Assembly: GCA_002269645.1 (NCBI GenBank)
Contig: NIVC01003875.1
Location: forward strand, 1-36,671
Direction: 5' to 3'
Length of the DNA stretch: 36,671 nt
DNA from: Macrostomum lignano
Lineage: Eukaryota
Under the pieces are notes generated by a model. That model was not told where the DNA came from. It made no database searches and worked only from the letters and a program-made list of their open reading frames with translations. Each line of letters begins with the position of its first letter. Position 1 is the first letter of the stretch. Shown here one piece after another: positions 3,927 through 36,671 of this stretch. Both the position numbers and the translations under genes were made by a program.

Positions 3927-6900
3927 ATGAAAACATGCACCAGATTTTTTCGTTACTTTCAACTCATTGTGTTTGGCTTGTTATTTTGGTTTTCTCCATC
4001 CGGTACGTTTATTCTGTTTTGATTAGAGTCAGAAAAAACCAGTTTGCTCTTGCTAAAACGTGGGTTACTAAAAACGCAGAGTGCTGTTCCGGTAGGACGC
4101 TTTACTCGTCATCTGGAACGATCGCGTGCCCCTCCTCTGGAGGCCAGTATTCAAACAATTTGGATGTTTCCTGGTCTATTCGACCACGTGGTGTCAGCCG
4201 AATCCGATTCAGCAAGCTGGATGTGGATTCGTGCTGCGACAAAGTTTTAATTTATGAAAGCGCAATCTACGCATCAAGCAGCTCAGAGAAGTTTCGACTT
4301 GTGCATGCAAACGCGACTGAGTCTGAGTTCTGGGTGAATTCGCCCTTTGTTGTGCGGTTTCGAAGTGACGGGTTTCACACGAGATCCGGATTTCGGCTTT
4401 CTTACGAACGCCAGTGGGAATCGATTCCAGGTGAATTTTATGCCTTACGTTTATAACAGCACTCTGGTTGACTTTTGCTGATTTATTTGATCTCGGATGA
4501 AAATGGAATTTCAGCTGCTACTGAGGTCATTCGGCAGAGAAGCGGTGTCAGACGGAGCCATCCAGATGTCGGGTCCTACCGCAATAACTACAAAAAAGCT
4601 TGGAGTATTTACGTGCCCAGAAATTCCCGTGTTTTCATTCGATTCACAAAGTTCAACACGGAATCTGGCCGCGACTATCTTAGGATATATTCAGGACTTG
4701 TTCCGCGATATCAACACACGGCTCTGCAAGCGATTTCAGGCAATCATAGAATTCTTCATCCGTCATACACGTTTTCGCATAGCGTTACCCTAATTTTCAC
4801 TACTGACGGCTCTGTTGTCCGTGAAGGGTTCGAATTTGAGTTCAATGTCCGTGAGTGATACAAGACGTCAACAGTATCTGGCAGTTTTTTCAGTTTTATT
4901 CAATTCAGAAGTTAAACTGTTCAGTGCAGAAAATATAAGTTAAAAGTTATGCAATCTTATGTTTATAGTTTCTTTTCTCGGCCAGATACGGACAGAGAAG
5001 CAACATAGTTTCCATAGTTACTCGTAGTTACATAAATCTGAATAAGTCTCAACATTGTTTATGTTGATGCAGGTTATTTGTACTACGGATTATGCGCCAT
5101 CGGCCTATCGATTATAATGGATAATTAGTTTTAAGCAATGAGAAGAGAACTCTTATAAATTCTCTTTAGATTACATAAATATTATCAACTTCCACAAAAA
5201 ATCTTAACGCTGCTACATTTACTCAGTTTGATACTCTTTACAGATGATCATGAATTACTGTGGATCTTTTCAAAATGGACCAGAATGGCCATAGGTGGCT
5301 CGAAATTCAGTTTTTCACTGCTTTCTATGGATCGAAATGTATCAGCTAGGTGTTACTTAGATCTTGAATGTGGAAGGCAAACTTCGGAGATCGCAATGAA
5401 TTCCGTAAGCCGGGCATTTATCTGCATTAAATTTTCGAAAAAAGTGCTATATACGAGCGTAATTACTGGTTTAAGTTTTTCTTATAACTTTGCATAGTGA
5501 AGGTAATATCTCTTGACCTTTCAAGTTTGCATTCAAAAGCTTGGACAAATTTAAAGAGCCTCAGATTATATATGAATTGTTTTTGCAATTCCTCCAGACG
5601 ATCTACTCACAATGAAGATCAGTTAAAAAATTGTACCTGTTTTCTGGAATCATCTCAGACACTGCTGTCTGCATTCGAAACATCACGTGCAGATTCCGTG
5701 GCAGCGGTATCAATGAACTGATTGAATCGACTCCAGCACCTGATGGTAAACAACTTTCTTCAATCAGTTTTTGAGACTCTGCATAGATGTTTTTGAAGAA
5801 GCGAAGTGTCTGTATTGCAATATTAGCAAAGCGGTTCAGTAACTGTAGCAGATTTTGATTATCCTGCTCTAGTTTCCTTCATACATATGAATAACTTTCA
5901 GTTAAGCCAGCTTCACTTGAAATCAGCCTGATAAAGCCTGAGCTGTGGAGCCTCTCAGATAGTTTGATTCGGTTTCGAGCTGTGTCTCAAGCCGAGTGTC
6001 GGCGAGTGAGGCATCGCTGCGAGCTGAGGCTTTTCAATGGAAGCGCAGTCACTGCTGTGCAAGTGAAGCGGGTAAGAATAATGTAACAATGCGTAGTTAA
6101 AATATTTAGCATAATATAATATACTTAGAGTAATTGCTATGATAGGCGTGTACAACTAAACGATGTACACTGTAGGCCCGTACTGATATGCAGATATACG
6201 CAATTGTATTTTCCTTCAATTTACAATACCCAGCTAGCGTATTTTTATTCTGATACAATTGCTACGTCAAAACTTCAGCAAGCATCACAGCCACGTATTT
6301 CTCAGTGTGTGAGCAGAGTTCAAACAGATTTTACTCTGCTGGCTGAGCTCATCGACACAGTCAATTCTACGATAATTTGTTACAAGCAAGCCGGAACAGT
6401 CAACTATTCTCTGCCGGCTATGCAACTGCGTGAGTTGAGTTAAGATTATGAAGTTAATGCATAAATATATGCGTATAATATAAATAATGTATATAGAGCT
6501 CATTAAAAACAGGAATTTTATGTATGCGCATAAAATCACTACGTTAGAATATATAACAGTATATAGCTATATAAATATACATAAAAATATATATATATAA
6601 TATATATATATATAAATATAATATATTAGAATATATAATATATATAACTATAGAATCTTCATACGAGCGTAGAAGCATGATTAGCGATATAGAAAAAAAG
6701 CGAGAACGATTACGAAAGATTTTAACTGATTTATTTTTGTGATTAATTTCATTAATTTTTAATCAAATAATTAACTTATTTGACTCTGTTTTTAAATGAA
6801 GTAAAAAGGTGACATTTGCGAGAGTAGGTTTGCAGAGTTTAAATCATTTGTTCAACGTATGTCATATGTACCAGCTGATTTATTCAATGTTTGGAATGTC

Positions 6901-8291
6901 GAATAAAGAAAGGTATTATTATGATCGGCTCCTTACAATGGTCATTTCCTTATATCAGCTGTTCGAGAAATTCAATGGAGATTCCCAGAGTCTACTGAGA
7001 TCGCTGCGGGTGCTCCAATGCGCATTTTATTAACAACAGCTGCAAGCATCCGAGGCCTGTCAGCGAAATGTCGGCTGCACCAGGAGTGCGAGAATGGAAC
7101 CATCGAAGTCCCGATCCGTGTTGTAAGATATAATCAAAATATTTGATACTTAATGAAGGCAAAAAGAAATAATAATTTTGGCTAAACATATTTGGCATCC
7201 GATTAATGTCTATTAAGGTTGATACTATTTGATATATACTTCTTGTGCGAAGTACTAGCCATATTTCCCACAATATGCATACACCATCAATTATGAAGTT
7301 CACTCGTCGTTTTACCTGCTACCACAGGATCGAATCGTCTCGACATCTTCGGGAAAAGTATTCCAGTTTTTTGGACGATGGCAGCGTCAAGTGTGCAGCC
7401 GCAATGTGTCTTGCGCATTCTCTGTGCCAGGAATGCTCGGTTCGATTGAATTCAGCCAATTACCTCCAGGTATTGCTGTTGACCTCTCTTGTGATTCATT
7501 TATTTCATAACAGCTCATAAAAACATGCGTTCTTAATGCATTTACAACCGTTTCTCCGTTTTATTGATTTCAGTTGAACCAAATGACTTACAGCTTAAGT
7601 TGATTGATCCTGAGCTGTGGCTACTCAACGGAGCAATTCAGTTCCGTGCGGTTTCCGAACACGCCTGTCCCAGTGTGAGGCACCGCTGTGAGCTGAGGAC
7701 GGCTACTAACTATTCGATTCCCGCGACGCTAATAAAGAAGGTTGTTTTTGTCTGTTGGCAGCATTATGTAGCTCGCTATTTGTGCAAGATAGTATGCTTT
7801 GCTTAACTTCAGGATGTCTCGAAGCCCATCGGGCCGCAGTGCTTCAGCTCGGTGATGTCGCAGTTCTTGGCGTTCGCTCAGCCATCAGACGTAGCGGGTT
7901 CCACCGTGAGGTGCCGCCTGCTCAACGGCAGCTCTGCGCTGCTCGTGCTTCCCGAAAAGGGTTTTGGTGAGTTTCGCAGCTGATTTCAGATGTTATACAC
8001 GAGAAAGCAGCCCTGCTTTAAATATCGCCTCCATCAACAGGAGAGACGAGGCTGGCCGAAGTCTGGGAGCGGCCACTGCTAGCAGCTTCATCAACTACGG
8101 CTGTTCTCGCCATCATTGCACTGGTAGCAGTGGTGGCCTGCTTTGTGCTGATGAGATCTGGTCGGTGGCCACCTTGGAAAAAATCTCCGGATGCGTCAGT
8201 AGTGAATGAGTCAATGAAGATGCAAATGACAGTCAGTAACCAATATTATGGCGAATCAGCAGGCATTGTAAGCAGCTTTAATGTGATTTGA
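3927..8291 (+). CDS. 12-exon type I membrane protein gene, copy 1: signal peptide-CUB-CUB-X1-Y1-X2-Y2-TM-cytoplasmic tail, with in-frame TGA in exon 5
   Basis: Exons 3927-4002, 4080-4430, 4515-4850, 5244-5404, 5598-5745, 5902-6071, 6279-6429, 6959-7122, 7328-7469, 7574-7740, 7813-7966, 8041-8291. All 11 introns are GT-AG (72-529 nt) with compatible phases. Signal peptide MKTCTRFFRYFQLIVFGLLFWFSPSEC. CUB motifs YSNNLDVSWSI...FRSDG...GFRLSY and YRNN...WSI...FNTE..RDYLRIY...FTTDGS...GF. Internal homology exon 4~8, 5~9, 6~10, 7~11. TM LLAASSTTAVLAIIALVAVVACFVLM. Stop TGA at 8289-8291. Confidence 0.88.
6540..6655. repeat. AT-rich low-complexity (TA)n-like tract in intron 7
   Basis: Almost pure A/T with TATA iterations. 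Also at ~21697-21812. Confidence 0.85.
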
Positions 8292-8588
8292 GGCACCAGA
8301 CTTCATCATATTTTCAGCAATGTCAAATTATTAATCATGCTTGCATCCGACTTTCAGCCTGATGACTCAACCGGAGTTTACGTCACGTGAAAGAGCCACC
8401 AAAAATGACTAATTACTACATACAGAAGACGATCGATACGAGCTAAAAAACCTAAAAATCTAGGGCAGTAGCTTTTTCTAAAATTTTTAACCTAGGTCTA
8501 TTGCTGCTATAGTTTTACTTTGCTTAAAAGTCAGTAATTACTTTCAACATTAGGTGTATATGTATCTGATAAATTCGGCAACATTTGA

Positions 8589-9210
8589 CTCAGCAACAGT
8601 CAAAAGTTCTACCCTCCAAATTGCAAAAACTTCACACTCACAATTCAACCCTCAAGTTACGCAACTAAGCCGCCGCGAGGAAGGGAAAGTTGATTGAATA
8701 TCAATACTCGTAGTAAAATCATAATTTTTTATGCAATATTTAGTTAGAATCGCGATGCGTGTGGGATCCCCTCGCACGCAGTAAGTGCGACGACTCTGCG
8801 GGGCATCCCAATGATGAGGCGGCGCAGAAAGTCCTGGGGAAGCCGCTCCGAAGCGTTTTCAATGGCATGACGCAGAGCTCTCCGCAACATTCTGTGGTGG
8901 ATTCTCTTTTCGAATGCTACGTTTTAGGAAGTCCCAGACATGCTCGATGGGATTCATGTCTGGGGACCGGGAAGGCCAGCGCAGAGTGCGCAGCTGTAGC
9001 TGTTCCTTCAGTTGACTAACAGCATCGGCTTGGTGTGGCGGGGCGTTGTTCCTGAGCTAGGTCTGCTTAATGTCCAGGCCTGGACCATTAAGCAGACCCA
9101 AGCCACCCCCAAGCGGCAATAAGCTTTGCGCGTGCCGTAGGTTGCGTCACTCGCAATAAGTTAAAAAAATCATCACGCTTAGTGGGGTGGAACTTTTGAC
9201 TGTTGCTGAG
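8589..9210 (-). mobile_element. Internally deleted Tc1/mariner (Tc1, DD34E) element, 622 bp
   Basis: 26-bp TIRs CTCAGCAACAGTCAAAAGTTC(T/C)ACCC (8589-8614 and 9185-9210, 25/26 identical), with TA after the right end. The minus strand (8744-9054, two frameshifts) encodes Q[D]NAPPHQADAVSQLKEQLQLRTLRWPSRSPDMNPIEHVWDFLKRSIR…LPQDFLRRLIIGMPRRV. This is the Tc1 DNAxxH/WPxxSPDxNPIE signature, with 34 residues between D and E. Confidence 0.9.
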
Positions 9211-10246
9211 TATATCAATATTAACCCGATGTAATAGCCTCTCCTGTACTCCTGATGGTCCTGATGCTTTATATAGTATAAAGTAAAACCAATTATCTTG
9301 TCATTTACTCAAGGTAGGTAATGCTCAACTGTAGAGCACTAATTAAAACAACATTGATCATCAATAAATAACTTTGCAATCCAATAGATAAAATGATTGA
9401 TTAAATTCTGTGTTTTTGACCTTGATGAAATTTGAAATTGCGAATCGACGGTTTTAAAATATTTGATAAGAAGTATAATCACGCCAATTTATTTCTACTG
9501 AAGTTTTTCGTCTGTTTGGTTTGGTGTTTAAAGTTATTGCGAGATTATTGCAATTGAAATTTAGATTTAAAATTAATAAGTCTGTAAATTTCATCAATCT
9601 TTAGCATCAAGTCTTTAGCAACATGTATATCCGTTTGCTATTATAAGTTATTTTATTTATAGATGTTTCTTGTCCTTACAGAAGTGACAGCCTACTAGAA
9701 GATAGTATAGTAGCTCTAGCTTAGAAAAAGTATTAGCTTAGTTCGCTTGGACTCGGGTATTCATTAAAACCGCATGAAATTCTAAGATTCGGTGTCAGCG
9801 TTTGGGTGGAGTCTAGTGACGAAGTTTATTAATATATTATATAATATATTCAATACCGAATAGAAACGCTGTAACAATTATACAGACTGTACTATAAGAG
9901 TTATACTACAAGCTATTAAAGTTCTTTACTGAAATACATCAACCGATTAATTTATTGATAATATGGCTTTCTAAAACGTTTAGGCTCTGCAGTTTATTCG
10001 CAAACAGTCTAGCTGTACATGAACGCCAAAGCTTATGCATAAAAATGCTGCGCATCTCATTGTTGCCAACAGAATTTTGGCCAATTTTTATCATGTGAAA
10101 CATTAAATTCTTCCTTGCCGCAGTGCAAGGGGTGCAAGGGCTTATAAACTTCAAATATAAACCGGAAAATGTAATGTACGCTCGTACCTGACACTAGGCA
10201 TTCGCATTTCGCTTGATGGCTCAAGCAATAAAAATTTAATTACACC

Positions 10247-10636
10247 GGGCCGTAGCCCAGTGATCTATAGTGAGGTAGTGTCTGCGGCCCAGGCTCGAGT
10301 CAAAGTGCAGTCACATTTATTGAAGTCCTAATTGGAATCTCAGCTTGGCTCTGCTCATGCAATTAGCAGCCTTGAGGGCCAATCACAAGGCGCAGTGAAG
10401 TGTGCATTCTAGACGATAATTAAATAAAGTTAGGGTTGCTGTACACTCCTGTGTGAGAGGATAATTAAATAAAGTTAGGGCTGCTGTACACTCCTGTGTG
10501 AGAGGATAATTAAATAAAGTTAGGGATGCTGTACACTCCTGTGTGAGAGTATGCCTGTGCGTATGACTGCGTACGTATCCGTGCGATTGTGCTCAGGGAG
10601 TCGTGGGAATGGGCAGTAATGTCTCTCGCTGGTTTT
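10247..10636 (+). mobile_element. tRNA-derived SINE, diverged copy B with internal 3x45-bp duplication
   Basis: A-box-like TAGCCCAGTGA at 10253 and B-box-like GGCTCGAGTC at 10292. Shares AAGTGCAGTCACATT, AATTGGAAT, CAAGGCGCAGTGAAGTGT and GGAATGGGCAGTAATG with copy A. Unit 2 copy at 25400-25790. Confidence 0.75.
10415..10549 (+). repeat. 3 x 45-bp tandem repeat GATAATTAAATAAAGTTAGGG(T/C/A)TGCTGTACACTCCTGTGTGAGAG
   Basis: Units at 10415, 10460 and 10505 differ at one position. Also at 25568-25702. Confidence 0.97.
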
Positions 10637-11306
10637 GTGACGAAACTTTTTTCTTACTTTTTTATCTTACCCGTATTGCACACATGTATTAGTAGCTGAT
10701 CTCTGTTAGCATACCATTTGTACAAGCTTACTATAAAAAAACAGAAACGACAGCGAGACAGCTTGCTTATCAGGGCATACCTGCAGATATCTCAGATCCT
10801 GTAAGCGTCCAAGTTAAATTGCAACCATGGGAGGTTATGTATACGACGAACATTCAAATGAAAAAGTGCTCCAATGGTGGCAAAAACTTTCATTGGCAGT
10901 AGATTTTGGCACGCTGAAGACACAGGCCGAGTAAAAAACTTGGCTAAGAATAAAGCATACTCAAGCTATCAAGCCTAAAGCCCTGATAAAATGAAGTACG
11001 ATCGTAGATGTGTCGTCGGATTGTCAGATCCACCGCGAGATTATTTTATCTTTCGATCAAATTAGTTTTTTTACAGTTACTTGTTCTTTAGTTTGTGCAA
11101 TTTCACTCTTGGACGTTTTTGACTCACTAAGTAATTGTTCTTGGTCACGCACCAACCCATATAATGGCTGTGCACGCTACTCTCTAGTCGTATGCACTTC
11201 AGCTAAGCCGACCACTAAGCAGCTAAAGGGCACGCTCTACTGTCTTATAAACTTGCAATCAACTTCCCTCGGTCTCCGAACCCATAAGTTCGCAATGCTA
11301 TTTGCA

Positions 11307-11580
11307 CTCAGCAACATTGAAAAGTCGCCACTCTTTGCTCCAATGAGCAATTTCTCTTGAACTTCTAGTAATTCTGAAAAAAATTACTAGAAAACTGATC
11401 GGGTAGCTTTAATCCGTCCAACCCTCGCACACCGCTCCCCCCACTTCATTCCTTAACTCAAGTCTGCCGTGGCGTAGCTGATTTGCGTCACTCGCAAAGA
11501 TTCAGAGACTTTACCTGCACTCTCAAAAGTGGCGACCTCGAAGGAATCTTCGGTGATGGAGAATTTTCGGTGTTACTGAG
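11307..11580. mobile_element. 274-bp MITE-like element with Tc1-type CTCAG termini
   Basis: Left end CTCAGCAACATTGAAAAGTCGCCACT. Right end (reverse complement) CTCAGTAACACCGAAAA[27 nt]GTCGCCACTTTTG, followed by TA. Shares the subterminal TTGCGTCACTCGCAA with the Tc1 element (9142-9156). Unit 2 copy at 26461-26734. Confidence 0.65.
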
Positions 11581-12415
11581 TATATAGGGCCCGATATATA
11601 CGATAAGATCGTTTTTAACTCCTATCTCCACAGTGTAAAAGTTCCTACGTACGATCAAACTTACGCTACGACAGCTTTAGAGTACGACCCCATAGTTTTT
11701 AAATGCGTTCTCGTCAGGACGATCAGATCGATGAAGCGGTGGGAAGCCAAGGCAGCTGACGCATTGAAATTGAACCTTACCCCGATTGTCAAGGCAACTT
11801 CGTGAGTTTTAACAAACATTAAAATTACTCCGCGAATGAATACATTTTTTACGATAATGAAATTTGAACATACCCACGCGCTTATTGTTGATCGTAATCT
11901 AGTCTCTAAAATTTAGATCTAAAAAGACACTAAAGTTTCTTGACTAACAGCGCGGTTTTAACTGATATTCATCCATCCATAGATCTTCGTTCATGCATAG
12001 AAGAAATGAAGTTTTTTCTGTTTGCAGAACAATTAACCTCAAAAGTCATCAGTTAATGAATGAACGAATATGAACAGATTGTCAACACAAAATACCATAA
12101 AATATTGATTTTTGCAAAATTCATGATATTAATTTCGAGCTGATGTGCAAAGCTTTTTATTGCATATTAACAAAATTGTATGAGTCTGTGAAATTCCAAC
12201 AGAAATTCAAATTTATCATTCTGAATTCTCCTATTTAAGTTTCTATTCATCCTTAGATACATACAGATTGTCAATTATGGTTTCTAGGTAAATTGCTCGC
12301 AAAAATAAATTAAACTGTCAATAAACTTAACTCGATCAAGAACGGTTGTTCTTTTGAAAGCAGGATCATTAAGAGCCACTCAAAATAGGCCTTCTGATGA
12401 CAAAGCGAACTGAAC

Positions 12416-12715
12416 TTATTCGGGGAGCGTTTGATCAACATGATTTACTTTGCCAACAACGGATCCCCGGGCACTCGGATCAACCCAACAACGAGATGAC
12501 CAATCACCAATTAGCCCTTTCTTTGACCCCCTGCCTGTGGCCTCCATCCCACTGCTATTGTAACCACTTGTGGGGGTGCAACGAAGCACAAGGAGAGATA
12601 ACCGCCGATAGTTCAGCTCTGCCGGCAGGATCCCCTCTTCCTCCTGCCCTCCGCAGGCCTTGCTTGGAATCAACCGCAGTCTGGCACCAAGGCGGTGACC
12701 ACGGCTATCTCAGGT
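12416..12715 (-). pseudogene. Degenerate DDE transposase fragment, probably Kolobok/Mutator-like type
   Basis: Broken minus-strand frames give AVVTALVPDCG, SKAC, GYNSSGMEATG, LIGDWSS and KVNHV. These resemble, in order, motifs I recall for Kolobok-type transposases (GVVTAI..TG, SKxCxxC, GSSxxME, GDGDSS, ECxNHV). Family assignment is from memory and has not been searched. Unit 2 copy at 27570-27869. Confidence 0.42.
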
Positions 12716-13242
12716 CATGGCTGGTCAGTTCAAGGAAGCATTTAATTTTAGAATGCCTCCTCTTTATTTAGGACAGGCTCACCGCGGCGCAAATCTGGAT
12801 TTTTTCGACAGTTTCAAGCACGGGAATTTCTGCCACCTCGTCCATGCCTAAGGGCTACCGGGCGACCGATCACTCACCTCCTGGAGGGGGACAGAACTGA
12901 GAACACCGGCACCACGGGATCTCCCTGCGCGACACAGTAGCACCAGCTGCCCGTGATCGGCAGGGGTCTGCGGAATGGACGGCAACACCTCCCTTCTGCA
13001 CCCATATTCTGGGAAGCCTTGCAGCTAATTCTAGCGGCAAGTGTGCAGTGTCCGTCATACAAAAGCTCGCAGTTGATAAATCAATCGTTTTTACAAGCCC
13101 GTACTCATGGACAAAGAAGACAAACGCTATAATATCCCTCTCGCAATACAGTTCGAAATAAACTGATACATACTTCCCCACCAACACACTGCGCGCTTTT
13201 TGCTAAAAGTAGTTGGTGAAGTCTCTTGCTAAAGTTTTCGAA

Positions 13243-13395
13243 TTCGATGTTGTGAAATTTTGACCTTGTGAAGTTTCGACCTTGTGAAAGTGGTTGCTAT
13301 TTGAGTTCTCGATGTTATGAAATTTCGACCTTGTGAAATTTCGATCGTGTGAAAGAAGGTGCTTTCGACGTTGTGAAATTTCGAGTTTGTGAAAC
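13243..13395. repeat. Degenerate 16-bp repeats (TTGTGAAATTTCGACC-like, ~7 copies) ending in GAAACCCCC; probable DNA-transposon subterminal repeats
   Basis: Read directly. Unit 2 copy at ~28396-28548. Confidence 0.75.
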
Positions 13396-14098
13396 CCCCC
13401 TTCAATGAATGGCTTCGAAAAGGAACATATTTGGCCCAGCCAGAAATTTGAATCCCTTGGGGAGTGGAGGGAGTGGGCCTGTACAATATCGAAAATATAC
13501 GATTCCCCATTCCCTTGCATTTTCTGTATCCCCTGTCACCCTTTTTCTGCGCTAACACCACTGAATAGAGGCCAGCTAAATTCCCAAAAGACACCACAGA
13601 TCCGAACCACCAAGAGCGCTTTCTTCTGAAAATAAAGTTCGTTCATTTCTTGGCATTGAGTTGGGTGTGTCAATAATTTCAGCATTAACGACAGTTAAAT
13701 TGATCAAATTTGAGTGTTGAGAACTATATGTTCGAATAATTGAACTAAATTTTTATCAATGTGTTTCATTAACTGGTTACTAACTCTTTTAAGGCTTATT
13801 AAGCCGTTATTACCCATGTGAATGTTACAGTTATTATATTTTTTACATTTTAATTACAAAGTTTAGCCTTTCAACAACGACGCCTAATCTGTTTTGCATA
13901 CTTGTCCTGTCTTACATTTACTACAATGAACAACAGTATCTGCTTGTAACTATCTATACTTCGAGATTTGTGTGTCATCTGAAACGAAAGGGTTGGTATT
14001 TTTAGCAAATATATACTTTCACAATCACATTACAGTGTGAGTTACAAACGTACAAATATTACAAACTCCATAAAAATTTACAACCGAAACAAATTCAC

Positions 14099-14217
14099 GG
14101 GGCGCTTTCATTAGGCAAAAATTTCACTTTGCCGAAAAGCACTCTCTTTCACTAGGCCGAACCTTATGGAAGAGCATACTCGGCAATGTGAAGTTTCGGC
14201 TTAGTAACCCCCCCCCC
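14099..14217. mobile_element. ~120-bp MITE-like imperfect inverted repeat
   Basis: Left arm GGGG…TTCATTAGGCAAAAATTTCACTTTGCCGA versus right arm (reverse complement) GGGGG…TTACTAAGCCGAAACTTCACATTGCCGA. Unit 2 copy at 29253-29370. Confidence 0.5.
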
Positions 14218-14330
14218 AAATTCACTAAGGTGGCTTTAAGCTACCTCAAATTTCCGAATTTCAAATCTTCAAACCCAAAAAGCAAAAAACTAAGACAGTT
14301 TTTCACTCAATCCCCCATAGCATTGCTCCA

Positions 14331-14566
14331 CTCCTCTCTACCCTCTCTCCCCTCTACCCTCTCCCCTCTCTACCCTCTCTCCTCTCTAGCCTCTCTCCCC
14401 TCTACCCTCTCTCCTCTCTACCCTCTCTCCTCTCTACCCTCTCTCCTCTCTACCCTCTCTCCTCTCTACCCTCTCTCCTCTCTACCCTCTCTCCTCTCTA
14501 CCCTCTCTCCTCTCTACCCTCTCTCCTCTCTACCCTCTCTCCTCTCTACCCTCTCTCCTCTCCCTA
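14331..14566. repeat. Polypyrimidine minisatellite, 16-bp unit CCCTCTCTCCTCTCTA
   Basis: Read directly. The unit 2 tract (29484-29700) is ~19 bp shorter. Confidence 0.95.
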
Positions 14567-15137
14567 CTTCTTTTCTAAAAGCCCGCTTTCTAAAAGCGCA
14601 AATATTTACAGGTGTAAATTTATCGTCAATTTGATGCTTTTAATCTTCTTTCGACTGCAAACAAAAAGTTGTTCTCGGGGGCTCTTAGCTCTACGCTACT
14701 AAAAGTAGTCTGATGCGCATTTAAATTTTATGAAACTTCACACATCTTTCCGAAAAAAATTATTTCACAATGTTGGCACTAGGCAACAGCAAATATAGCC
14801 CTAACGTTTATTGTAAAGAGTAACCACCTATTATTGTGATAAAAAACGGTTCTCCCGCTAGGCTGAAAGGGCAGTGCTATTAAATAAAGCTGCCTTGAAC
14901 ATGAAACACGCCAAACTTAGGTTGCCGCCTCATAGGCCGCCGGGCGATCACCGGGCGGCTTCGATTAGGATTAAAAAAATCGTCCATATTAAGGCTATAT
15001 AAAGTATTACGAGTAAAAAATCACCATTTCTCATTGAAAAATCAGATCATATTTCATTGTAAAGTGTAAATAAAAATATTTACCGACTGCCCTCACAGGC
15101 GGCCGCGAGGGCGCACACCGCCCACTGTACGCCCCAC

Positions 15138-15272
15138 TTAGTTGTCCCACTGGTCCCAGTGTCCTTCACCAGACTCTTTATTGCCAGCCTCAAAATGCAG
15201 AAAAGTCTTTGTGTCACCGGACTGTCGGTAGATCACCCACGATTTCCGCACAAGCATCGCAAGAAGATGAAA
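15138..15272 (-). pseudogene. Last 135 bp of the piggyBac remnant left at the deleted unit 1/2 junction
   Basis: Matches 30272-30406 with one substitution, then breaks off at the deletion. Confidence 0.85.
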
Positions 15273-15861: not shown

Positions 15862-18800
15862 CCCCCTGTTTCTAATAAAAAAGCCGTGATGTTCCCTTTT
15901 TTTCAAATAATATAGATGAACCAAAGTTTTGCTGGAAAAACAAAAGACACGCAGAATTTTTATGCACTAGTTTGGTGTTAATTTGTAACTAGATTGTTTT
16001 AGCTGCAGAACCTGAAGTTTTTAAAAGGCCATACATGTATTGTCGGTTAAACTAATCAGCTGATGCATTTCACTAAAAAAATAATATTACGATTTCTGTA
16101 TAACAATCTAAATAACTGTTACAGTGTATCTATTCGTTAACGAAATTTATAAACTCAATTTACTAGACTCATCCTAAACGCTGACTTCGAATAGTAGAAG
16201 TTATTTAGGGTTAGGCGAAGTGACGAAGACTGTTATTATAGCATAACGTGAAAGACAGCGAGTATAAATGAACGAGGCCAGCAGACATAGACCGAAGAGC
16301 CGCTAGGTTCTGACCTTCGCTAGGTTACCGGCACTGCCATCAGAGATGTACCCGCGAAATCGCCGAGCTGCGCCAATCTCCGAGCATTGAAAGCAGACGT
16401 CGCTCCACCACGGCGGAGCGAGTGCGTAGAGAAGCTGAAAGTTTCTGATGTGTCCCTTATTACCCGACTTATGGTAATCAAAGAACACTCACTTCTAGCT
16501 CAATAGCTAGGCAGCCCAGTAAGTCAATTAAAGGTACTTCTTACGTTGACGTCGCTTGGAGATATCTCTTCTGTAGTCTTCGAGTAGATCTCGCTTGTCT
16601 CTATGTGATCTCGTAGATCAGGCGCCTTGATTCTTCAGTTGCTCTGGTCCTGGTTCCTCTTGTACTTCCGATAAGTTCCTCCGGCCGGTATCTTCAGTCA
16701 GGACCAATCAGAGGCCTCGTATCAACAATGGGTACCCTGCGCCGAACAGCGGTTTGAATTAAGCCTCCTTCTTCTAGCAGTGCCTTTATGCACTCTAGGT
16801 ATGGCTCCGGAAACCACTGATAGTCCTCTAAGATCTATCAGGGGCAGTCCTTCTGGAGACTGCAACCAATGGAGTCTAAACAGACTCAAGAGTCTCAACA
16901 GACTCAAATAGACTCAAGTCTCAATAGACTTGAGCGAGACGTCTCTAACACAACGGGCGCAAATAAGGAAGGCTTACCGCAACAACTCGACCGAGTCTCG
17001 ATTGACTTGGTGATCAGGAAGTCCTCCTAAGGCTTCCTCTTCGGAGCTTCTCCTCTCGTCGGGAGTTGGCTCCTGGTCCGCTTCGGACCGCTTGTATTTA
17101 TAGGCAACTTTTTGATCCAAAATAGCATCATTACAAACCACGTGTTGCGCTAAAAGGGGAAAATGGCTCATGGCGTATCATTTTGGTAACATCTTTTCCT
17201 GGTAGCGTGATTCATTCAAAGCTTAGGCGCACATGCGTGTACTTACTTACTTATAGTAGCATTATACGATTATCTTCTTTTAACCTTTTTTAACGGGAGG
17301 TAGAACACTCTACATTTCCATTCCGGTCTTGCGAAACAAACGCTGCAGGCGGTGGCGAACCTCCACTGAGTCAGAAGGCCACCAAAATGGCGGCTCTGAC
17401 GGACTAAGAATACGGGAAAGCTCTGAGACGTATCGAGAATTAGATTCAGCTGCCAGAGATGTCGGGGCGCAATTTGAGAGCGGCTGCTGAGCTCGGACCC
17501 ATGACCGGGAGCTGGAGCTGGTGTGGATGCGCTCACCGATCAGCACTGTCTTTGAACGAGCTACATAGATGGCCCGATTTCGGGTCATCCCGCCAGCCCC
17601 GAAGCGAACGGCCCGCGTTTGCAAAAGTCTATGGCAAATCAACCATCATCTCAGCACACCCGTTGCCGACGGGAATGGCCCGATTTCGGGTCAGCGTCTA
17701 ACAATGTTGCAAAGAGTAGATTACGCAAAAAAATATTATTAGCTTAGAGATGTCATACCTGTAATTATAATAACTCGTTTATAATAAAAATACTGCGGCA
17801 GTTTTCAACAAAACTGTAAAAATTGCTTTTACGAAGTAAGCTTGTTCCCAATGAAGCCGGAATAGTCTAATTACATGATTTATTAGGGACATTTTTAAAG
17901 AGGGAAATGATTTACAGACTGGAGCATCTGCAAGATACGAAAAAGTAAGCTGGTACAATGGGTAGGTATTTAGGTAGGTAGGTAGGTAGGTAGGTAGGTA
18001 GGTAGGTAGGTAGGTAGGTAGGTAGGTAGGTAGGTAGGTTAGGTTAGGGTTAGGGTTAGGGTTAGGCTGAAAATTATTTGGCTTTTTTTACGCTATCACC
18101 TTGATTGCTGAGTGTACAGGCTGAAGTTTGAAGGCAACGAAAATGGAATAAAAAGGTAGACGAGAAGAATAAACAGACGATGCTGTCATATGTCATGCAT
18201 GCATAAATTTTCCATCCTAACTTTTTTATGCGTAGCGTTTCTGTGAAGACACTTATATACGAGTAACAATACAACAGCTTCAGCTTATAGGTTCAAATTT
18301 GTAAATTCTGTCCTACTCAAAGCTAAAAAACACGTATGATCATTGTATGAGCATTATGTCGTGTTCCATTTTAATTAACTAAAAATAAGTTGTTTTGCAG
18401 TTGGAAGACATGTGATGTGTTTTAGGAAAAAACGACTCCACAGATTCATTAAACATTCTATCTGTTCTAAAATTAGCAAAGCATTCGACTTAAGCGACAG
18501 AAGTCCTCGTACACTGTCTTAACAAGTTTTCATTGCTTTCCATAAAGCACCATCCAACCCAGTCAATAGTTTTAGTTTTCACCTGAGATTTCTTGTAAGA
18601 CCATTATAGTTTAAATGTACTACACTTCGCTATGCTTTGATAGCAAATTATGAAGATATGAAATCAATTCTCTATATTGATATGACCAAAACACCAGAAA
18701 TACTTCAGGGGGTGATTTCTGAAATGAAGTGTTGAGATACGGCACACTTTTACCTTCAAGGCATTCTGTATTACAATATTTATGATTTATTACGTTCTAT

Positions 18801-19083: not shown

Positions 19084-22000
19084 ATGAAAACATGCACCAG
19101 ATTTTTTCGTTACTTTCAACTCATTGTGTTTGGCTTGTTATTTTGGTTTTCTCCATCCGGTACGTTTATTCTGTTTTGATTAGAGTCAGAAAAAACCAGT
19201 TTGCTCTTGCTAAAACGTGGGTTACTAAAAACGCAGAGTGCTGTTCCGGTAGGACGCTTTACTCGTCATCTGGAACGATCGCGTGCCCCTCCTCTGGAGG
19301 CCAGTATTCAAACAATTTGGATGTTTCCTGGTCTATTCGACCACGTGGTGTCAGCCGAATCCGATTCAGCAAGCTGGATGTGGATTCGTGCTGCGACAAA
19401 GTTTTAATTTATGAAAGCGCAATCTACGCATCAAGCAGCTCAGAGAAGTTTCGACTTGTGCATGCAAACGCGACTGAGTCTGAGTTCTGGGTGAATTCGC
19501 CCTTTGTTGTGCGGTTTCGAAGTGACGGGTTTCACACGAGATCCGGATTTCGGCTTTCTTACGAACGCCAGTGGGAATCGATTCCAGGTGAATTTTATGC
19601 CTTACGTTTATAACAGCACTCTGGTTGACTTTTGCTGATTTATTTGATCTCGGATGAAAATGGAATTTCAGCTGCTACTGAGGTCATTCGGCAGAGAAGC
19701 GGTGTCAGACGGAGCCATCCAGATGTCGGGTCCTACCGCAATAACTACAAAAAAGCTTGGAGTATTTACGTGCCCAGAAATTCCCGTGTTTTCATTCGAT
19801 TCACAAAGTTCAACACGGAATCTGGCCGCGACTATCTTAGGATATATTCAGGACTTGTTCCGCGATATCAACACACGGCTCTGCAAGCGATTTCAGGCAA
19901 TCATAGAATTCTTCATCCGTCATACACGTTTTCGCATAGCGTTACCCTAATTTTCACTACTGACGGCTCTGTTGTCCGTGAAGGGTTCGAATTTGAGTTC
20001 AATGTCCGTGAGTGATACAAGACGTCAACAGTATCTGGCAGTTTTTTCAGTTTTATTCAATTCAGAAGTTAAACTGTTCAGTGCAGAAAATATAAGTTAA
20101 AAGTTATGCAATCTTATGTTTATAGTTTCTTTTCTCGGCCAGATACGGACAGAGAAGCAACATAGTTTCCATAGTTACTCGTAGTTACATAAATCTGAAT
20201 AAGTCTCAACATTGTTTATGTTGATGCAGGTTATTTGTACTACGGATTATGCGCCATCGGCCTATCGATTATAATGGATAATTAGTTTTAAGCAATGAGA
20301 AGAGAACTCTTATAAATTCTCTTTAGATTACATAAATATTATCAACTTCCACAAAAAATCTTAACGCTGCTACATTTACTCAGTTTGATACTCTTTACAG
20401 ATGATCATGAATTACTGTGGATCTTTTCAAAATGGACCAGAATGGCCATAGGTGGCTCGAAATTCAGTTTTTCACTGCTTTCTATGGATCGAAATGTATC
20501 AGCTAGGTGTTACTTAGATCTTGAATGTGGAAGGCAAACTTCGGAGATCGCAATGAATTCCGTAAGCCGGGCATTTATCTGCATTAAATTTTCGAAAAAA
20601 GTGCTATATACGAGCGTAATTACTGGTTTAAGTTTTTCTTATAACTTTGCATAGTGAAGGTAATATCTCTTGACCTTTCAAGTTTGCATTCAAAAGCTTG
20701 GACAAATTTAAAGAGCCTCAGATTATATATGAATTGTTTTTGCAATTCCTCCAGACGATCTACTCACAATGAAGATCAGTTAAAAAATTGTACCTGTTTT
20801 CTGGAATCATCTCAGACACTGCTGTCTGCATTCGAAACATCACGTGCAGATTCCGTGGCAGCGGTATCAATGAACTGATTGAATCGACTCCAGCACCTGA
20901 TGGTAAACAACTTTCTTCAATCAGTTTTTGAGACTCTGCATAGATGTTTTTGAAGAAGCGAAGTGTCTGTATTGCAATATTAGCAAAGCGGTTCAGTAAC
21001 TGTAGCAGATTTTGATTATCCTGCTCTAGTTTCCTTCATACATATGAATAACTTTCAGTTAAGCCAGCTTCACTTGAAATCAGCCTGATAAAGCCTGAGC
21101 TGTGGAGCCTCTCAGATAGTTTGATTCGGTTTCGAGCTGTGTCTCAAGCCGAGTGTCGGCGAGTGAGGCATCGCTGCGAGCTGAGGCTTTTCAATGGAAG
21201 CGCAGTCACTGCTGTGCAAGTGAAGCGGGTAAGAATAATGTAACAATGCGTAGTTAAAATATTTAGCATAATATAATATACTTAGAGTAATTGCTATGAT
21301 AGGCGTGTACAACTAAACGATGTACACTGTAGGCCCGTACTGATATGCAGATATACGCAATTGTATTTTCCTTCAATTTACAATACCCAGCTAGCGTATT
21401 TTTATTCTGATACAATTGCTACGTCAAAACTTCAGCAAGCATCACAGCCACGTATTTCTCAGTGTGTGAGCAGAGTTCAAACAGATTTTACTCTGCTGGC
21501 TGAGCTCATCGACACAGTCAATTCTACGATAATTTGTTACAAGCAAGCCGGAACAGTCAACTATTCTCTGCCGGCTATGCAACTGCGTGAGTTGAGTTAA
21601 GATTATGAAGTTAATGCATAAATATATGCGTATAATATAAATAATGTATATAGAGCTCATTAAAAACAGGAATTTTATGTATGCGCATAAAATCACTACG
21701 TTAGAATATATAACAGTATATAGCTATATAAATATACATAAAAATATATATATATAATATATATATATATAAATATAATATATTAGAATATATAATATAT
21801 ATAACTATAGAATCTTCATACGAGCGTAGAAGCATGATTAGCGATATAGAAAAAAAGCGAGAACGATTACGAAAGATTTTAACTGATTTATTTTTGTGAT
21901 TAATTTCATTAATTTTTAATCAAATAATTAACTTATTTGACTCTGTTTTTAAATGAAGTAAAAAGGTGACATTTGCGAGAGTAGGTTTGCAGAGTTTAAA

Positions 22001-23446
22001 TCATTTGTTCAACGTATGTCATATGTACCAGCTGATTTATTCAATGTTTGGAATGTCGAATAAAGAAAGGTATTATTATGATCGGCTCCTTACAATGGTC
22101 ATTTCCTTATATCAGCTGTTCGAGAAATTCAATGGAGATTCCCAGAGTCTACTGAGATCGCTGCGGGTGCTCCAATGCGCATTTTATTAACAACAGCTGC
22201 AAGCATCCGAGGCCTGTCAGCGAAATGTCGGCTGCACCAGGAGTGCGAGAATGGAACCATCGAAGTCCCGATCCGTGTTGTAAGATATAATCAAAATATT
22301 TGATACTTAATGAAGGCAAAAAGAAATAATAATTTTGGCTAAACATATTTGGCATCCGATTAATGTCTATTAAGGTTGATACTATTTGATATATACTTCT
22401 TGTGCGAAGTACTAGCCATATTTCCCACAATATGCATACACCATCAATTATGAAGTTCACTCGTCGTTTTACCTGCTACCACAGGATCGAATCGTCTCGA
22501 CATCTTCGGGAAAAGTATTCCAGTTTTTTGGACGATGGCAGCGTCAAGTGTGCAGCCGCAATGTGTCTTGCGCATTCTCTGTGCCAGGAATGCTCGGTTC
22601 GATTGAATTCAGCCAATTACCTCCAGGTATTGCTGTTGACCTCTCTTGTGATTCATTTATTTCATAACAGCTCATAAAAACATGCGTTCTTAATGCATTT
22701 ACAACCGTTTCTCCGTTTTATTGATTTCAGTTGAACCAAATGACTTACAGCTTAAGTTGATTGATCCTGAGCTGTGGCTACTCAACGGAGCAATTCAGTT
22801 CCGTGCGGTTTCCGAACACGCCTGTCCCAGTGTGAGGCACCGCTGTGAGCTGAGGACGGCTACTAACTATTCGATTCCCGCGACGCTAATAAAGAAGGTT
22901 GTTTTTGTCTGTTGGCAGCATTATGTAGCTCGCTATTTGTGCAAGATAGTATGCTTTGCTTAACTTCAGGATGTCTCGAAGCCCACCGGGTCGCGGTGCT
23001 TCAGCTCGGTGATGTCGCAGTTCTTGGCGTTCGCTCAGCCATCAGACGTAGCGGGTTCCACTGTGAGATGCCGCCTGCTCAACGGCAGCTCTGCGCTGCT
23101 CGTGCTGCCCGAAAAGGGTTTTGGTGAGTTTCGCAGCTGATTTCAGATGTTATACACGAGGAAGCAGCCCTGCTTTAAATATCGCCTCCATCAACAGGAG
23201 AGACGAGGCTGGCGAAGTCTGGGAGCGGCCACTGCTAGCAGCTTCATCAACTACGGCTGTTCTCGCCATCATTGCATTGGTAGCAGTAGTGGCCTGCCTT
23301 GTGCTAATGAGATCTGGTCGGTGGCCACCTTGGAAAAAATCGCCGGATGCGGCAGTAGTGAATGAGTCGGTGAAATGCAACCGACAGTCAGTAACCAATA
23401 TTATGGCGAATCAGCAGGCATTGTAAGCAGCTTTAATGTGATTTGA
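19084..23446 (+). CDS. Same receptor gene, copy 2 (exon-5 TGA at 20770 plus two 1-nt deletions in exon 12; possible pseudogene or soluble variant)
   Basis: Exons 19084-19159, 19237-19587, 19672-20007, 20401-20561, 20755-20902, 21059-21228, 21436-21586, 22116-22279, 22485-22626, 22731-22897, 22970-23123, 23198-23446. I found no difference from copy 1 in exons 1-10. Exons 11-12 have 16 substitutions and deletions at ~23213 and ~23374. Confidence 0.85.
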
Positions 23447-23741
23447 GGCACCAGACTTCATCATATTTTCAGCAATGTCAAATTATTAATCATGCTTGCA
23501 TCCGACTTTCAGCCTGATGACTCAACCGGAGTTTACGTCACGTGAAAAGCCACCAAAAATGACTAATTACTACATACAGAAGACGATCGATACGAGCTAA
23601 AAAACCTAAAAATCTAGGGCAGTAACTTTTTCTAAAATTTTTAACCTAGGTCTATTGCTGCTATAGTTTTACTTTGCTTAAAAGTCAGTAATTACTTTCA
23701 ACATTAGGTGTATATGTATCTGATAATTCGGCAACTTTTGA

Positions 23742-24362
23742 CTCAGCAACAGTCAAAAGTTCTACCCTCCAAATTGCAAAACTTCACACTCACAATTCAA
23801 CCCTCAAGTTACGCAACTAAGCCGCCGCGAGGAAGGGAAAGTTGATTGAATATCAATACTCGTAGTAAAATCATAATTTTTTATGCAATATTTAGTTAGA
23901 ATCGCGATGCGTGTGGGATCCCCTCGCACGCAGTAAGTGCGACGACTCTGCGGGGCATCCCAATGATGAGGCGGCGCAGAAAGTCCTGGGGAAGCCGCTC
24001 CGAAGCGTTTTCAATGGCATGACGCAGAGCTCTCCGCAACATTCTGTGGTGGATTCTCTTTTCGAATGCTACGTTTTAGGAAGTCCCAGACATGCTCGAT
24101 GGGATTCATGTCTGGGGACCGGGAAGGCCAGCGCAGAGTGCGCAGCTGTAGCTGTTCCTTCAGTTGACTAACAGCATCGGCTTGGTGTGGCGGGGCGTTG
24201 TTCCTGAGCTAGGTCTGCTTAATGTCCAGGCCTGGACCATTAAGCAGACCCAAGCCACCCCCAAGCGGCAATAAGCTTTGCGCGTGCCGTAGGTTGCGTC
24301 ACTCGCAATAAGTTAAAAAAATCATCACGCTTAGTGGGGTGGAACTTTTGACTGTTGCTGAG
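23742..24362 (-). mobile_element. Internally deleted Tc1 element, unit 2 copy
   Basis: Same TIRs and transposase remnant as 8589-9210. Confidence 0.9.
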
Positions 24363-29483: not shown

Positions 29484-29700
29484 CTCCTCTCTACCCTCTC
29501 TCCCCTCTACCCTCTCCTCTCTACCCTCTCTCCTCTCTAGCCTCTCTCCCTCTACCCTCTCTCCTCTCTACCCTCTCTCCTCTCTACCCTCTCTCCTCTC
29601 TACCCTCTCTCCTCTCTACCCTCTCTCCTCTCTACCCTCTCTCCTCTCTACCCTCTCTCCTCTCTACCCTCTCTCCTCTCTACCCTCTCTCCTCTCCCTA
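29484..29700. repeat. Polypyrimidine minisatellite, unit 2
   Basis: Same 16-bp unit. Confidence 0.95.
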
Positions 29701-30271
29701 CTTCTTTTCTAAAAGCCCGCTTTCTAAAAGCGCAAATATTTACAGGTGTAAATTTATCGTCAATTTGATGCTTTTAATCTTCTTTCGACTGCAAACAAAA
29801 AGTTGTTCTCGGGGGCTCTTAGCTCTACGCTACTAAAAGTAGTCTGATGCGCATTTAAATTTTATGAAACTTCACACATCTTTCCGAAAAAAATTATTTC
29901 ACAATGTTGGCACTAGGCAACAGCAAATATAGCCCTAACGTTTATTGTAAAGAGTAACCACCTATTATTGTGATAAAAAACGGTTCTCCCGCTAGGCTGA
30001 AAGGGCAGTGCTATTAAATAAAGCTGCCTTGAACATGAAACACGCCAAACTTAGGTTGCCGCCTCATAGGCCGCCGGGCGATCACCGGGCGGCTTCGATT
30101 AGGATTAAAAAAATCGTCCATATTAAGGCTATATAAAGTATTACGAGTAAAAAATCACCATTTCTCATTGAAAAATCAGATCATATTTCATTGTAAAGTG
30201 TAAATAAAAATATTTACCGACTGCCCTCACAGGCGGCCGCGAGGGCGCACACCGCCCACTGTACGCCCCAC

Positions 30272-34997: not shown

Positions 34998-36671
34998 ATG
35001 AAAACATGCACCAGATTTTTTCGTTACTTTCAACTCATTGTGTTTGGCTTGTTATTTTGGTTTTCTCCATCCGGTACGTTTATTCTGTTTTGATTAGAGT
35101 CAGAAAAAACCAGTTTGCTCTTGCTAAAACGTGGGTTACTAAAAACGCAGAGTGCTGTTCCGGTAGGACGCTTTACTCGTCATCTGGAACGATCGCGTGC
35201 CCCTCCTCTGGAGGCCAGTATTCAAACAATTTGGATGTTTCCTGGTCTATTCGACCACGTGGTGTCAGCCGAATCCGATTCAGCAAGCTGGATGTGGATT
35301 CGTGCTGCGACAAAGTTTTAATTTATGAAAGCGCAATCTACGCATCAAGCAGCTCAGAGAAGTTTCGACTTGTGCATGCAAACGCGACTGAGTCTGAGTT
35401 CTGGGTGAATTCGCCCTTTGTTGTGCGGTTTCGAAGTGACGGGTTTCACACGAGATCCGGATTTCGGCTTTCTTACGAACGCCAGTGGGAATCGATTCCA
35501 GGTGAATTTTATGCCTTACGTTTATAACAGCACTCTGGTTGACTTTTGCTGATTTATTTGATCTCGGATGAAAATGGAATTTCAGCTGCTACTGAGGTCA
35601 TTCGGCAGAGAAGCGGTGTCAGACGGAGCCATCCAGATGTCGGGTCCTACCGCAATAACTACAAAAAAGCTTGGAGTATTTACGTGCCCAGAAATTCCCG
35701 TGTTTTCATTCGATTCACAAAGTTCAACACGGAATCTGGCCGCGACTATCTTAGGATATATTCAGGACTTGTTCCGCGATATCAACACACGGCTCTGCAA
35801 GCGATTTCAGGCAATCATAGAATTCTTCATCCGTCATACACGTTTTCGCATAGCGTTACCCTAATTTTCACTACTGACGGCTCTGTTGTCCGTGAAGGGT
35901 TCGAATTTGAGTTCAATGTCCGTGAGTGATACAAGACGTCAACAGTATCTGGCAGTTTTTTCAGTTTTATTCAATTCAGAAGTTAAACTGTTCAGTGCAG
36001 AAAATATAAGTTAAAAGTTATGCAATCTTATGTTTATAGTTTCTTTTCTCGGCCAGATACGGACAGAGAAGCAACATAGTTTCCATAGTTACTCGTAGTT
36101 ACATAAATCTGAATAAGTCTCAACATTGTTTATGTTGATGCAGGTTATTTGTACTACGGATTATGCGCCATCGGCCTATCGATTATAATGGATAATTAGT
36201 TTTAAGCAATGAGAAGAGAACTCTTATAAATTCTCTTTAGATTACATAAATATTATCAACTTCCACAAAAAATCTTAACGCTGCTACATTTACTCAGTTT
36301 GATACTCTTTACAGATGATCATGAATTACTGTGGATCTTTTCAAAATGGACCAGAATGGCCATAGGTGGCTCGAAATTCAGTTTTTCACTGCTTTCTATG
36401 GATCGAAATGTATCAGCTAGGTGTTACTTAGATCTTGAATGTGGAAGGCAAACTTCGGAGATCGCAATGAATTCCGTAAGCCGGGCATTTATCTGCATTA
36501 AATTTTCGAAAAAAGTGCTATATACGAGCGTAATTACTGGTTTAAGTTTTTCTTATAACTTTGCATAGTGAAGGTAATATCTCTTGACCTTTCAAGTTTG
36601 CATTCAAAAGCTTGGACAAATTTAAAGAGCCTCAGATTATATATGAATTGTTTTTGCAATTCCTCCAGACG
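34998..36671 (+). CDS. Same receptor gene, copy 3 (partial: exons 1-4 and first codon of exon 5)
   Basis: Exons 34998-35073, 35151-35501, 35586-35921, 36315-36475, and exon 5 starting at 36669. The ORF-track translations are identical to copy 1. Confidence 0.87.

Follow-up and report, generated by a model that had tools for sequence, protein, structure and literature searches.

A probable young nonsense mutation in a tandemly repeated CUB/Ig-like gene of Macrostomum lignano

We analysed a stretch of 36,671 nucleotides of nuclear DNA of the flatworm Macrostomum lignano (contig NIVC01003875.1 of the assembly GCA_002269645.1, positions 1 to 36,671 of the forward strand), which is hereafter called the window. 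The window consists of a unit of about 15.16 kb that is repeated head to tail in 2.4 copies, the offsets between the copies being +15157 and +15914. Each unit carries a gene of a CUB-domain family, and the subject of this report is a TGA codon that interrupts the reading frame of the gene in both complete copies (copies 1 and 2). The third copy is truncated by the end of the window 13 nt ahead of the position where the same TGA is expected. A bacterial-style listing of open reading frames (ORFs) showed only that the window is eukaryotic, and it was replaced by the mapping of spliced gene models. The proteins closest to the conceptual product of copy 1, which was assembled from the long open segments of the plus strand, were all CUB-domain proteins of M. 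lignano.

Two of these proteins, both full-length paralogues, were used for the analysis of the gene structure. P0001 (BOX15_Mlig000815g2) is a protein of 965 aa encoded by 17 exons and containing six immunoglobulin-like (Ig-like) modules, and P0002 (BOX15_Mlig014562g1) is a protein of 759 aa encoded by 13 exons. The BOX15 models belong to the Mlig_3_7 annotation, which was derived from a genome-guided RNA-seq transcriptome (StringTie/TACO/TBONE; PMC5730564). Because of this origin, the exon junctions of P0001 and P0002 carry transcript support. Papers mentioning the gene IDs Mlig014562 and Mlig000815 were sought in the literature, and none was found. We projected the 13-exon model of P0002 (locus L001, NIVC01000829.1) onto the window by alignment, and recovered the exon coordinates of P0001 on the locus L002 (NIVC01002005.1). 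The features obtained are listed in Table 1.

The mapping showed that the 12 introns of copy 1 are all of the GT-AG type (24 of 24 splice sites canonical) and that the copy has no frameshift. Its conceptual coding sequence (CDS) is 2277 nt long and contains exactly one internal stop. Of the introns around exons 4 and 5, the two outer ones (introns 3 and 5) have phase 1 and the one between the exons (intron 4) has phase 0. The exons between positions 5244 and 7966 form the two-exon cassettes 4+5, 6+7, 8+9, and 10+11, with lengths of 309, 321, 306, and 321 nt, respectively, each of which has a phase-1 intron on each side. Exons 4+5 are homologous to exons 8+9.

Table 1. Features mapped in the window. 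In splice-site sequences the slash marks the exon boundary.
Feature	Position	Strand	Remarks
Gene copy 1, start codon to natural TGA terminator	3927..8390	+	mapped from the P0002 model
Copy-1 exons 1-5	3927-4002, 4080-4430, 4515-4850, 5244-5404, 5598-5745	+	
Copy-1 exons 6-9	5902-6071, 6279-6429, 6959-7122, 7328-7469	+	
Copy-1 exons 10-13	7574-7740, 7813-7966, 8044-8267, 8358-8390	+	
Exon 4	5244..5404	+	first half of Ig-like module A1; phase-0 donor AATTCC/gtaagc; 161 nt
Exon 5	5598..5745	+	second half of module A1; 148 nt; acceptor ttcctccag/ACG, donor GATG/gtaaac; holds the premature stop
CAA TGA	5610..5615	+	CAG CGA in both paralogues; GC>AT dinucleotide change
Gene copy 2	19084..23545	+	mapped; exons 11-12 mosaic, resembling P0001
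Exon 5 of copy 2	20755..20902	+	TGA at 20770-20772
Gene copy 3, partial	34998..36671	+	exons 1-4 plus the first 3 nt of exon 5
Tc1/mariner-type transposase fragment	8862-9056	-	just 3' of the gene, repeated in copy 2; Pfam DDE_3, E=1.2e-10
piggyBac-type transposase C-terminal fragment	ORF 30272-30697	-	in the long junction; PF13843, 22.3 bits vs 22.4 cutoff (just under)
Minisatellite, 16-nt period	14336-14715 and 29550-29849		
Short ORF with motif HSLRRGGATSAF	1184-1324 and 16323-16499	-	recalls tyrosine recombinases (Crypton/DIRS-like elements)

The predicted architecture of the protein is a signal peptide, two CUB domains (CUB-CUB), four Ig-like modules, a transmembrane helix, and a short tail ending in VYVT. 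This C-terminal motif is conserved and is encoded on a separate last exon of 33 nt. In a Pfam search, the 313-aa N-terminal product matched the CUB family PF00431 with 62.8 bits (cutoff 21.4) in two stretches, the single domains scoring 26 and 42.9 bits, and there were zero matches for the Ig-like modules. For the non-CUB part, a set of 1.84 billion representative proteins yielded only 10 relatives; those that were looked up or named all came from M. lignano. The AlphaFold2 model of modules A1 and B1 of P0002, made from a shallow 6-sequence alignment, had a predicted local distance difference test value (pLDDT) of 75.5 and a predicted template modelling score (pTM) of 0.68, and consisted of two all-beta sandwiches. 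Its top PDB matches in Foldseek were antibody light chains, that is, tandem immunoglobulin domains (probability 1.0, E~1e-6). The two domains are oriented differently relative to each other, and for this reason the template modelling score over both was only about 0.4. According to this model, the modules encoded by the exon pairs from 4 to 11 are predicted to be Ig-like beta-sandwiches at the fold level.

CUB-containing type-I membrane proteins such as the neuropilins, NETO1/2, LEV-10 and SOL-1 of C. elegans, and CDCP1 likewise have an N-terminal signal peptide, tandem extracellular CUB domains, a single transmembrane helix, and a short cytoplasmic tail. Unlike these proteins, the family described here has four (or six) membrane-proximal Ig-like modules, has no Pfam match for them, and has relatives only in M. 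lignano. No orthology of the gene to any named receptor was found.

The in-frame TGA is confirmed as called in the sequence of the window. It lies at 5613-5615, which is codon 314 (nt 940-942 of the 2277-nt CDS, at 41% of the CDS), and it recurs in copy 2 (Table 1). It is contained in the 25-mer ACGATCTACTCACAATGAAGATCAG, which is identical at 5598 and 20755 (2 matches, against 0 expected by chance). The sequence spanning the TGA is ACTCACAATGAAGATC in the window and its CGA counterpart is ACTCACAGCGAAGATC, and the context of the stop in exon 5 is UGA AGA UCA. Past the TGA, the reading frame stays open. The TGA is the sole defect of copy 1. In the lineage to which the window copies belong, which we call W-type, markers within exon 5 include GTTAAAAAATTGTACCTG and ATCATCTCAGACACT, and a peptide specific to this type downstream of codon 314 would be, for example, VKPASLEISLIKPELWSLSDSLIR. 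Each module has four invariant cysteines. In the model of A1, codon 314 corresponds to residue 68, in the predicted loop between strands 59-66 and 73-80, and it falls between the first and the second pair of these cysteines.

We also examined whether the position of the stop leaves a simple way around it. In exon 5 downstream of the TGA there are zero phase-0 AG acceptors; only phase-1 acceptors (5623, 5659, and 5737) and phase-2 acceptors occur there. If exon 5 (148 nt) were skipped by itself, a frameshift would result. The three cryptic phase-1 acceptors are in frame with the donor of exon 3, and the pyrimidine tract of the one at 5659 amounts to 70%; those at 5659 and 5623 are also found in the paralogues, and therefore they are not novel features. 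The stop lies upstream of 8 introns, well before the last exon junction, so that by its position it is of the kind that makes a transcript a substrate of nonsense-mediated decay (NMD). The W-type mRNA, if made, would thus be expected to be an NMD substrate. A first-pass annotation of this DNA had placed the TGA at the same positions in both copies and at codon 314, had given the same boundaries of exon 5, and had described both the open frame after the stop, homologous to exon 9, and the lack of a phase-0 acceptor 3' of it. The mapping of the P0002 model agrees with all of these.

To learn which codon preceded the TGA, we compared the paralogues. At the aligned codons, the DNA of both P0001 and P0002 reads CAG CGA, with Arg encoded by the latter, and the acceptor and the donor of exon 5 are the same as in the window. 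In terms of protein, P0001 and P0002 have ...EIAMNS/TIYSQRRSA..., and the window has ...EIAMNS/TIYSQ*RSV..., the slash here marking the junction of exons 4 and 5. Sense codons are also present at the aligned point in the internal repeat (exon 9) and in distant members of the family; the aligned residue across the family is R, a gap, E or T, and never Cys. As judged from this comparison, the TGA is a derived CGA (Arg) to TGA nonsense substitution that stands beside a synonymous CAG to CAA change, because two intact paralogues with the same splice sites read CAG CGA. The first-pass annotation had considered a CGA>TGA nonsense allele that was present before the amplification, and had pointed to the paralogues outside the array as the place to look; the CGA in both of them, within the same exon boundaries, and the identity of the two copies around the TGA speak in favour of this suggestion. 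The features of an unprocessed pseudogene, namely a derived disabling mutation and retained introns, are seen here as CGA in two paralogues vs TGA in the window and as 12 of 12 introns kept.

Then the age of the mutation was estimated from the changes that occurred on the branch leading to the window. The changes were assigned to branches by parsimony, comparing the window with P0001 and P0002, and multiple hits were ignored. On the window-specific branch we counted 36 synonymous changes and 60 non-synonymous ones. Its omega value was about 0.53, equal upstream and downstream of the stop, and was below 1 overall at P=0.0025. The omega of the branch of the intact P0002 was similar (0.47). Insertions and deletions (indels) provided the sharper test. 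On the window branch, exons 1-7 had 0 indels vs 14 in introns 1-6, where the neutral expectation for the exons is 18.2 indels (Poisson P=1.3e-8). In the same exons and introns, the substitutions per site on the window branch were 0.047 and 0.077, respectively. A coarser comparison of the window with L001 over the whole gene agreed with this, with 1 in-frame indel in 2277 exon positions and 46 indels in 1959 intron positions.

By these values, the W-type lineage was under purifying selection for essentially all its separate history. The zero exon indels confine any neutral period to roughly the last sixth of the window branch. The nonsense mutation is thus very young in evolutionary terms. A loss of constraint would be recognized by an omega value near 1 and by further lesions; we found an omega of about 0.53 and 0 exon indels. 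This is what a very recent event would leave, and so we infer, rather than demonstrate, the pseudogene status of the W-type copies. We dropped the omega value downstream of the stop as an independent test, since exons 8-13 of the window are about 98% identical to the 3' part of P0001 and, because of recent recombination, are not independent of it. As a separate observation, the window branch includes a change at codon 196 (exon 3), by which the sole cysteine of the second CUB domain (ESGCDYL in both paralogues) is replaced with Arg; further radical changes on this branch include G31R, S138W, and G208R.

From the start of the unit to position 7828, copies 1 and 2 agree at every base, except in the first 1.3 kb, in which there are a few single-base or 2-nt length changes and one substitution. 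Because the copies are identical at the stop, both TGAs are one allele that was duplicated and not two observations. The first-pass annotation had stressed the presence of the TGA in both complete copies; its presence there holds, and its weight as independent evidence does not. The TGA would be older than the copying, or it may have been spread by conversion. In copy 2, the patch 22986-23777 (corresponding to 7829-8625 of copy 1) contains about 20 substitutions, most of which are of the P0001 type, and five single-base deletions. Exons 11-12 of copy 2 have the P0001-type variant at most of the sites that differ from copy 1, and exon 12 lacks one nucleotide each at 23212 and 23374, two losses by which its frame is shifted. 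The patch may have arisen by gene conversion and genuine decay, or else reflect a consensus that is chimeric or badly polished. The two frameshifts were therefore not taken as firm evidence of decay, as they lie in a patch of about 0.8 kb that has five single-base deletions.

The similarity to P0001 extends beyond the gene. Positions 14404-25858 of L002, from intron 11 of P0001 to the end of the flank, are colinear with 22089-33538 of the window at 98.9% identity. Once past the gene, most 500-nt bins reach 99-100%. A 779-bp segment at the unit junction is covered by the alignment, as is the beginning of the unit that follows. The same part of L002 is shared likewise with 6932-15272 of the window. 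The 5' two-thirds of P0001, which contain the CGA, are only about 89% identical to the window copies. P0001 thus looks like a recombinant gene, of 17 exons with an extra pair of modules and a W-type 3' end. An intact, annotated paralogue thus has the same type of repeat unit behind it, and it may be the first member of this very array. Because the intact gene has the same type of unit after it, the amplification of an interrupted gene needs no selective reason; unequal crossing-over and gene conversion copy whatever sits in such a locus.

The comparisons show a derived, very recent nonsense substitution in an otherwise intact tandem paralogue. From this, we think it probable that the W-type copies are ordinary newborn pseudogenes or null alleles, and not a case of recoding. 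The course of events would be as follows. The W-type lineage of a family of type-I membrane proteins restricted to M. lignano gained the change from CGA (Arg) to TGA together with the adjacent synonymous change from CAG to CAA. In the tandem array of units of about 15-16 kb, unequal crossing-over or gene conversion would then have multiplied the mutated unit or homogenised the array, so that both complete copies share the same allele. The W-type copies would now be newborn unprocessed pseudogenes or null alleles, and their mRNA, if made, would be degraded by NMD or would give a 313-aa fragment ending within an Ig-like domain. The loss would be tolerated thanks to the intact paralogues P0001, which has the same type of unit after it, and P0002, which lies elsewhere, in a genome that is also that of a recent polyploid, and the amplification would have taken place without a selective reason. 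It is known that M. lignano underwent a recent whole-genome duplication, with paralogous copies about 2% different (PMC10733133), and that its genome shows massive recent duplication (PMC5730564, PMC10733133). The first-pass annotation had treated the amplification of an interrupted gene as a puzzle, and we think that the answer may be an ordinary one: an intact paralogue is followed by the same unit, littered with transposable-element (TE) fragments, in a genome with massive recent duplication.

Several points weigh against this interpretation. An intact ORF with an omega below 1 is equally expected of a gene that is still functional. Gene conversion among the paralogues, which is seen in copy 2 and in the 3' part of P0001, might preserve the intact appearance of a copy that is dead; it also weakens the downstream part of the branch analysis and may distort the branch assignment. 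The frameshifts of copy 2 fit decay, yet they may be errors of a long-read consensus. Furthermore, the transcript-based NCBI annotation contains no W-type protein, which is a weak negative as the relevant Mlig_3_7 contig ends within the first W-type unit.

We considered whether splicing could rescue the gene. If exons 4+5 were skipped in frame, the TGA would be removed together with module A1, and a protein with CUB-CUB, three Ig-like modules, and a transmembrane helix would be left. The arithmetic is suitable, since exons 4+5 comprise 161+148=309 nt with phase-1 introns on both sides, and on this point the mapping bears out the exon numbering, the intron phases, and the in-frame skipping that the first-pass annotation had worked out. 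Moreover, these exons encode one predicted beta-sandwich module, the number of modules varies naturally in the family (six in P0001), the remaining ORF of copy 1 is intact with an omega of about 0.5, and an automated UniProt model of another paralogue, P0005 (A0A1I8HLB7), joins exon 3 to exon 6. The situation resembles nonsense-associated altered splicing, for example the revertant transcripts of dystrophin, in that the stop lies in a 309-nt two-exon cassette of the same phase that equals one repeat module. Unlike in the dystrophin case, exons 4 and 5 retain intact splice sites, which match those of the paralogues with both exons included. The youth of the mutation accounts for the intact ORF just as well. 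As for the models, P0005 as well as P0003 (A0A1I8GS19) and P0004 (A0A1I8GSH8) are automated predictions, and a gene finder avoids stops anyway. P0003 and P0004 are identical to exons of the window with several exons left out, and they omit exon 3 as well. These two models join exon 2 to exon 6, so that the second CUB domain and module A1 are lost. The joins in the three models are probably routes of a gene finder around stops or gaps, and the W-type UniProt entries are likely mis-annotated. The junctions in question would read GAGTTCAATGTCC/TTAAGCCAGCTTCAC for exons 3-6, GCAATGAATTCC/ACGATCTACTCACAATGA for exons 4-5, and GAATCGATTCCAG/TTAAGCCAGCTTCAC for exons 2-6. On balance, we regard it as unlikely that the gene works by such skipping. 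The related idea that the W-type copies are alive because the nonsense codon itself forces or selects the skipping of exons 4+5, or the joining of the exon-3 donor to the cryptic acceptor at 5659, giving a receptor without A1, seems to us quite unlikely.

A different function would arise if the 313-aa product, with its signal peptide, CUB-CUB, and half an Ig-like domain, acted as a secreted decoy and the array had been amplified for dosage. The signal peptide and the two CUB domains do lie intact 5' of the stop, and at least two copies have the allele. In the model, however, the stop comes after strand 59-66 of A1, so that the product would lack three strands, along with two of the four invariant cysteines, and a partial domain with an unpaired Cys would remain; the 313-aa CUB-CUB decoy of the first-pass annotation thus would end in the middle of a domain. 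The exons downstream are not relaxed compared to those upstream (omega 0.53 in both), NMD is expected from a stop far 5' of 8 exon junctions, and the same type of repeat unit, full of TE fragments, also follows the intact gene. A decoy is therefore highly improbable in our opinion. That the consensus or the assembly is wrong, the true codon being a sense codon and the near-identical copies an expanded repeat, we consider very unlikely. The copies differ mostly by homopolymer-length indels, which are typical of a long-read consensus, and haplovariants are prone to collapse or expansion in assemblies of this species (PMC10733133). What separates the window from the paralogues, however, is a two-base substitution (GC>AT) and not an indel, and P0003 and P0004, which come from another annotation, match the exons of the window yet avoid exon 5, as a predictor would do with a stop in the assembly. 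The 5' part of the gene, exons and introns included, differs from the paralogues by about 10-15%, and because of this divergence it represents a distinct locus and not a mis-polished copy of a paralogue.

Finally, decoding of the TGA by selenocysteine insertion, by programmed readthrough, or by adenosine-to-inosine editing of UGA to UGG would explain why the frame downstream is open and homologous, and an in-frame TGA in an otherwise open ORF conserved among homologues is also what selenoprotein genes have. Unlike in selenoprotein genes, the homologous residue here is Arg in the close paralogues and variable, never Cys, in the distant ones, so that the UGA is aligned with neither Cys nor Sec, the four invariant Cys of the module being elsewhere; TGA is also the normal terminator of the ORFs of this family. 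A search with Rfam at the gathering score gave 0 matches in the whole window, the selenocysteine insertion sequence (SECIS) included. At E<=10, no SECIS or other meaningful Rfam match was found over 5400-10400, which covers the gene from exon 4 on and the 3' region where the first-pass annotation had suggested looking; the only matches there were three chance-level ones to snoRNA and miRNA families. With regard to readthrough, the base after the stop is A. UGA-A is not a leaky context, an example of a leaky one being UGA-CUAG. Neither a leaky context nor a stimulatory structure was found, as the local fold of 5540-5700 was no stabler than that of shuffled sequences (z=-0.37). Recoding thus appears extremely unlikely, and its place as the least likely option in the first-pass annotation was well chosen.

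Other parts of the unit are of transposon or repeat character. The 779-bp segment mentioned above (30291-31069 of the window) lies at the junction of copies 2 and 3 and partly at the start of the window, and it is missing from the junction of copies 1 and 2. It encodes the piggyBac-type fragment of Table 1. The unit lengths of 15157 and 15914 differ because this segment is present at one junction and not at the other. The minisatellite has a strong skew of C over G, from which a spurious 148-aa ORF results, and copy 2 is without one 17-nt stretch of it. The ORF bearing HSLRRGGATSAF had no match in a Pfam search at E<0.1, and Pfam gave nothing for most of the intergenic ORFs of the window.

Taken together, the W-type copies resemble an unprocessed (duplicated) pseudogene or null allele in a tandem family, in that the introns are kept, there is one derived stop in place of Arg, intact paralogues exist, and the copies are homogenised. 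They are unlike a typical unprocessed pseudogene in that copy 1 is without a second lesion and the branch was under purifying selection; the loss of function is what we infer from the stop. The mutation would be biologically ordinary, that is, a first-hit nonsense mutation in a redundant and recently duplicated gene, and would have no bearing on a long-standing open question. For the annotation of the genome, we recommend marking the locus as a tandem paralogue with a nonsense codon and not "repairing" it by exon-skipping models such as the UniProt entries A0A1I8GS19 and A0A1I8GSH8. As far as databases show, the CUB/Ig-like family seems to be restricted to Macrostomum, to be composed of modular phase-1 cassettes, and to have recombining copies. 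If the skipping of exons 4+5 were true after all, the array would be a fresh case of the evolution of domain number, with exons lost under the pressure of a nonsense codon, in a receptor family that is lineage-specific and evolves rapidly. If the W-type copies are newborn pseudogenes, as we think probable, the locus would show, in a clean and datable case, how pseudogenisation begins in a flatworm that is a neopolyploid and in which duplication is rampant and copies evolve in concert.

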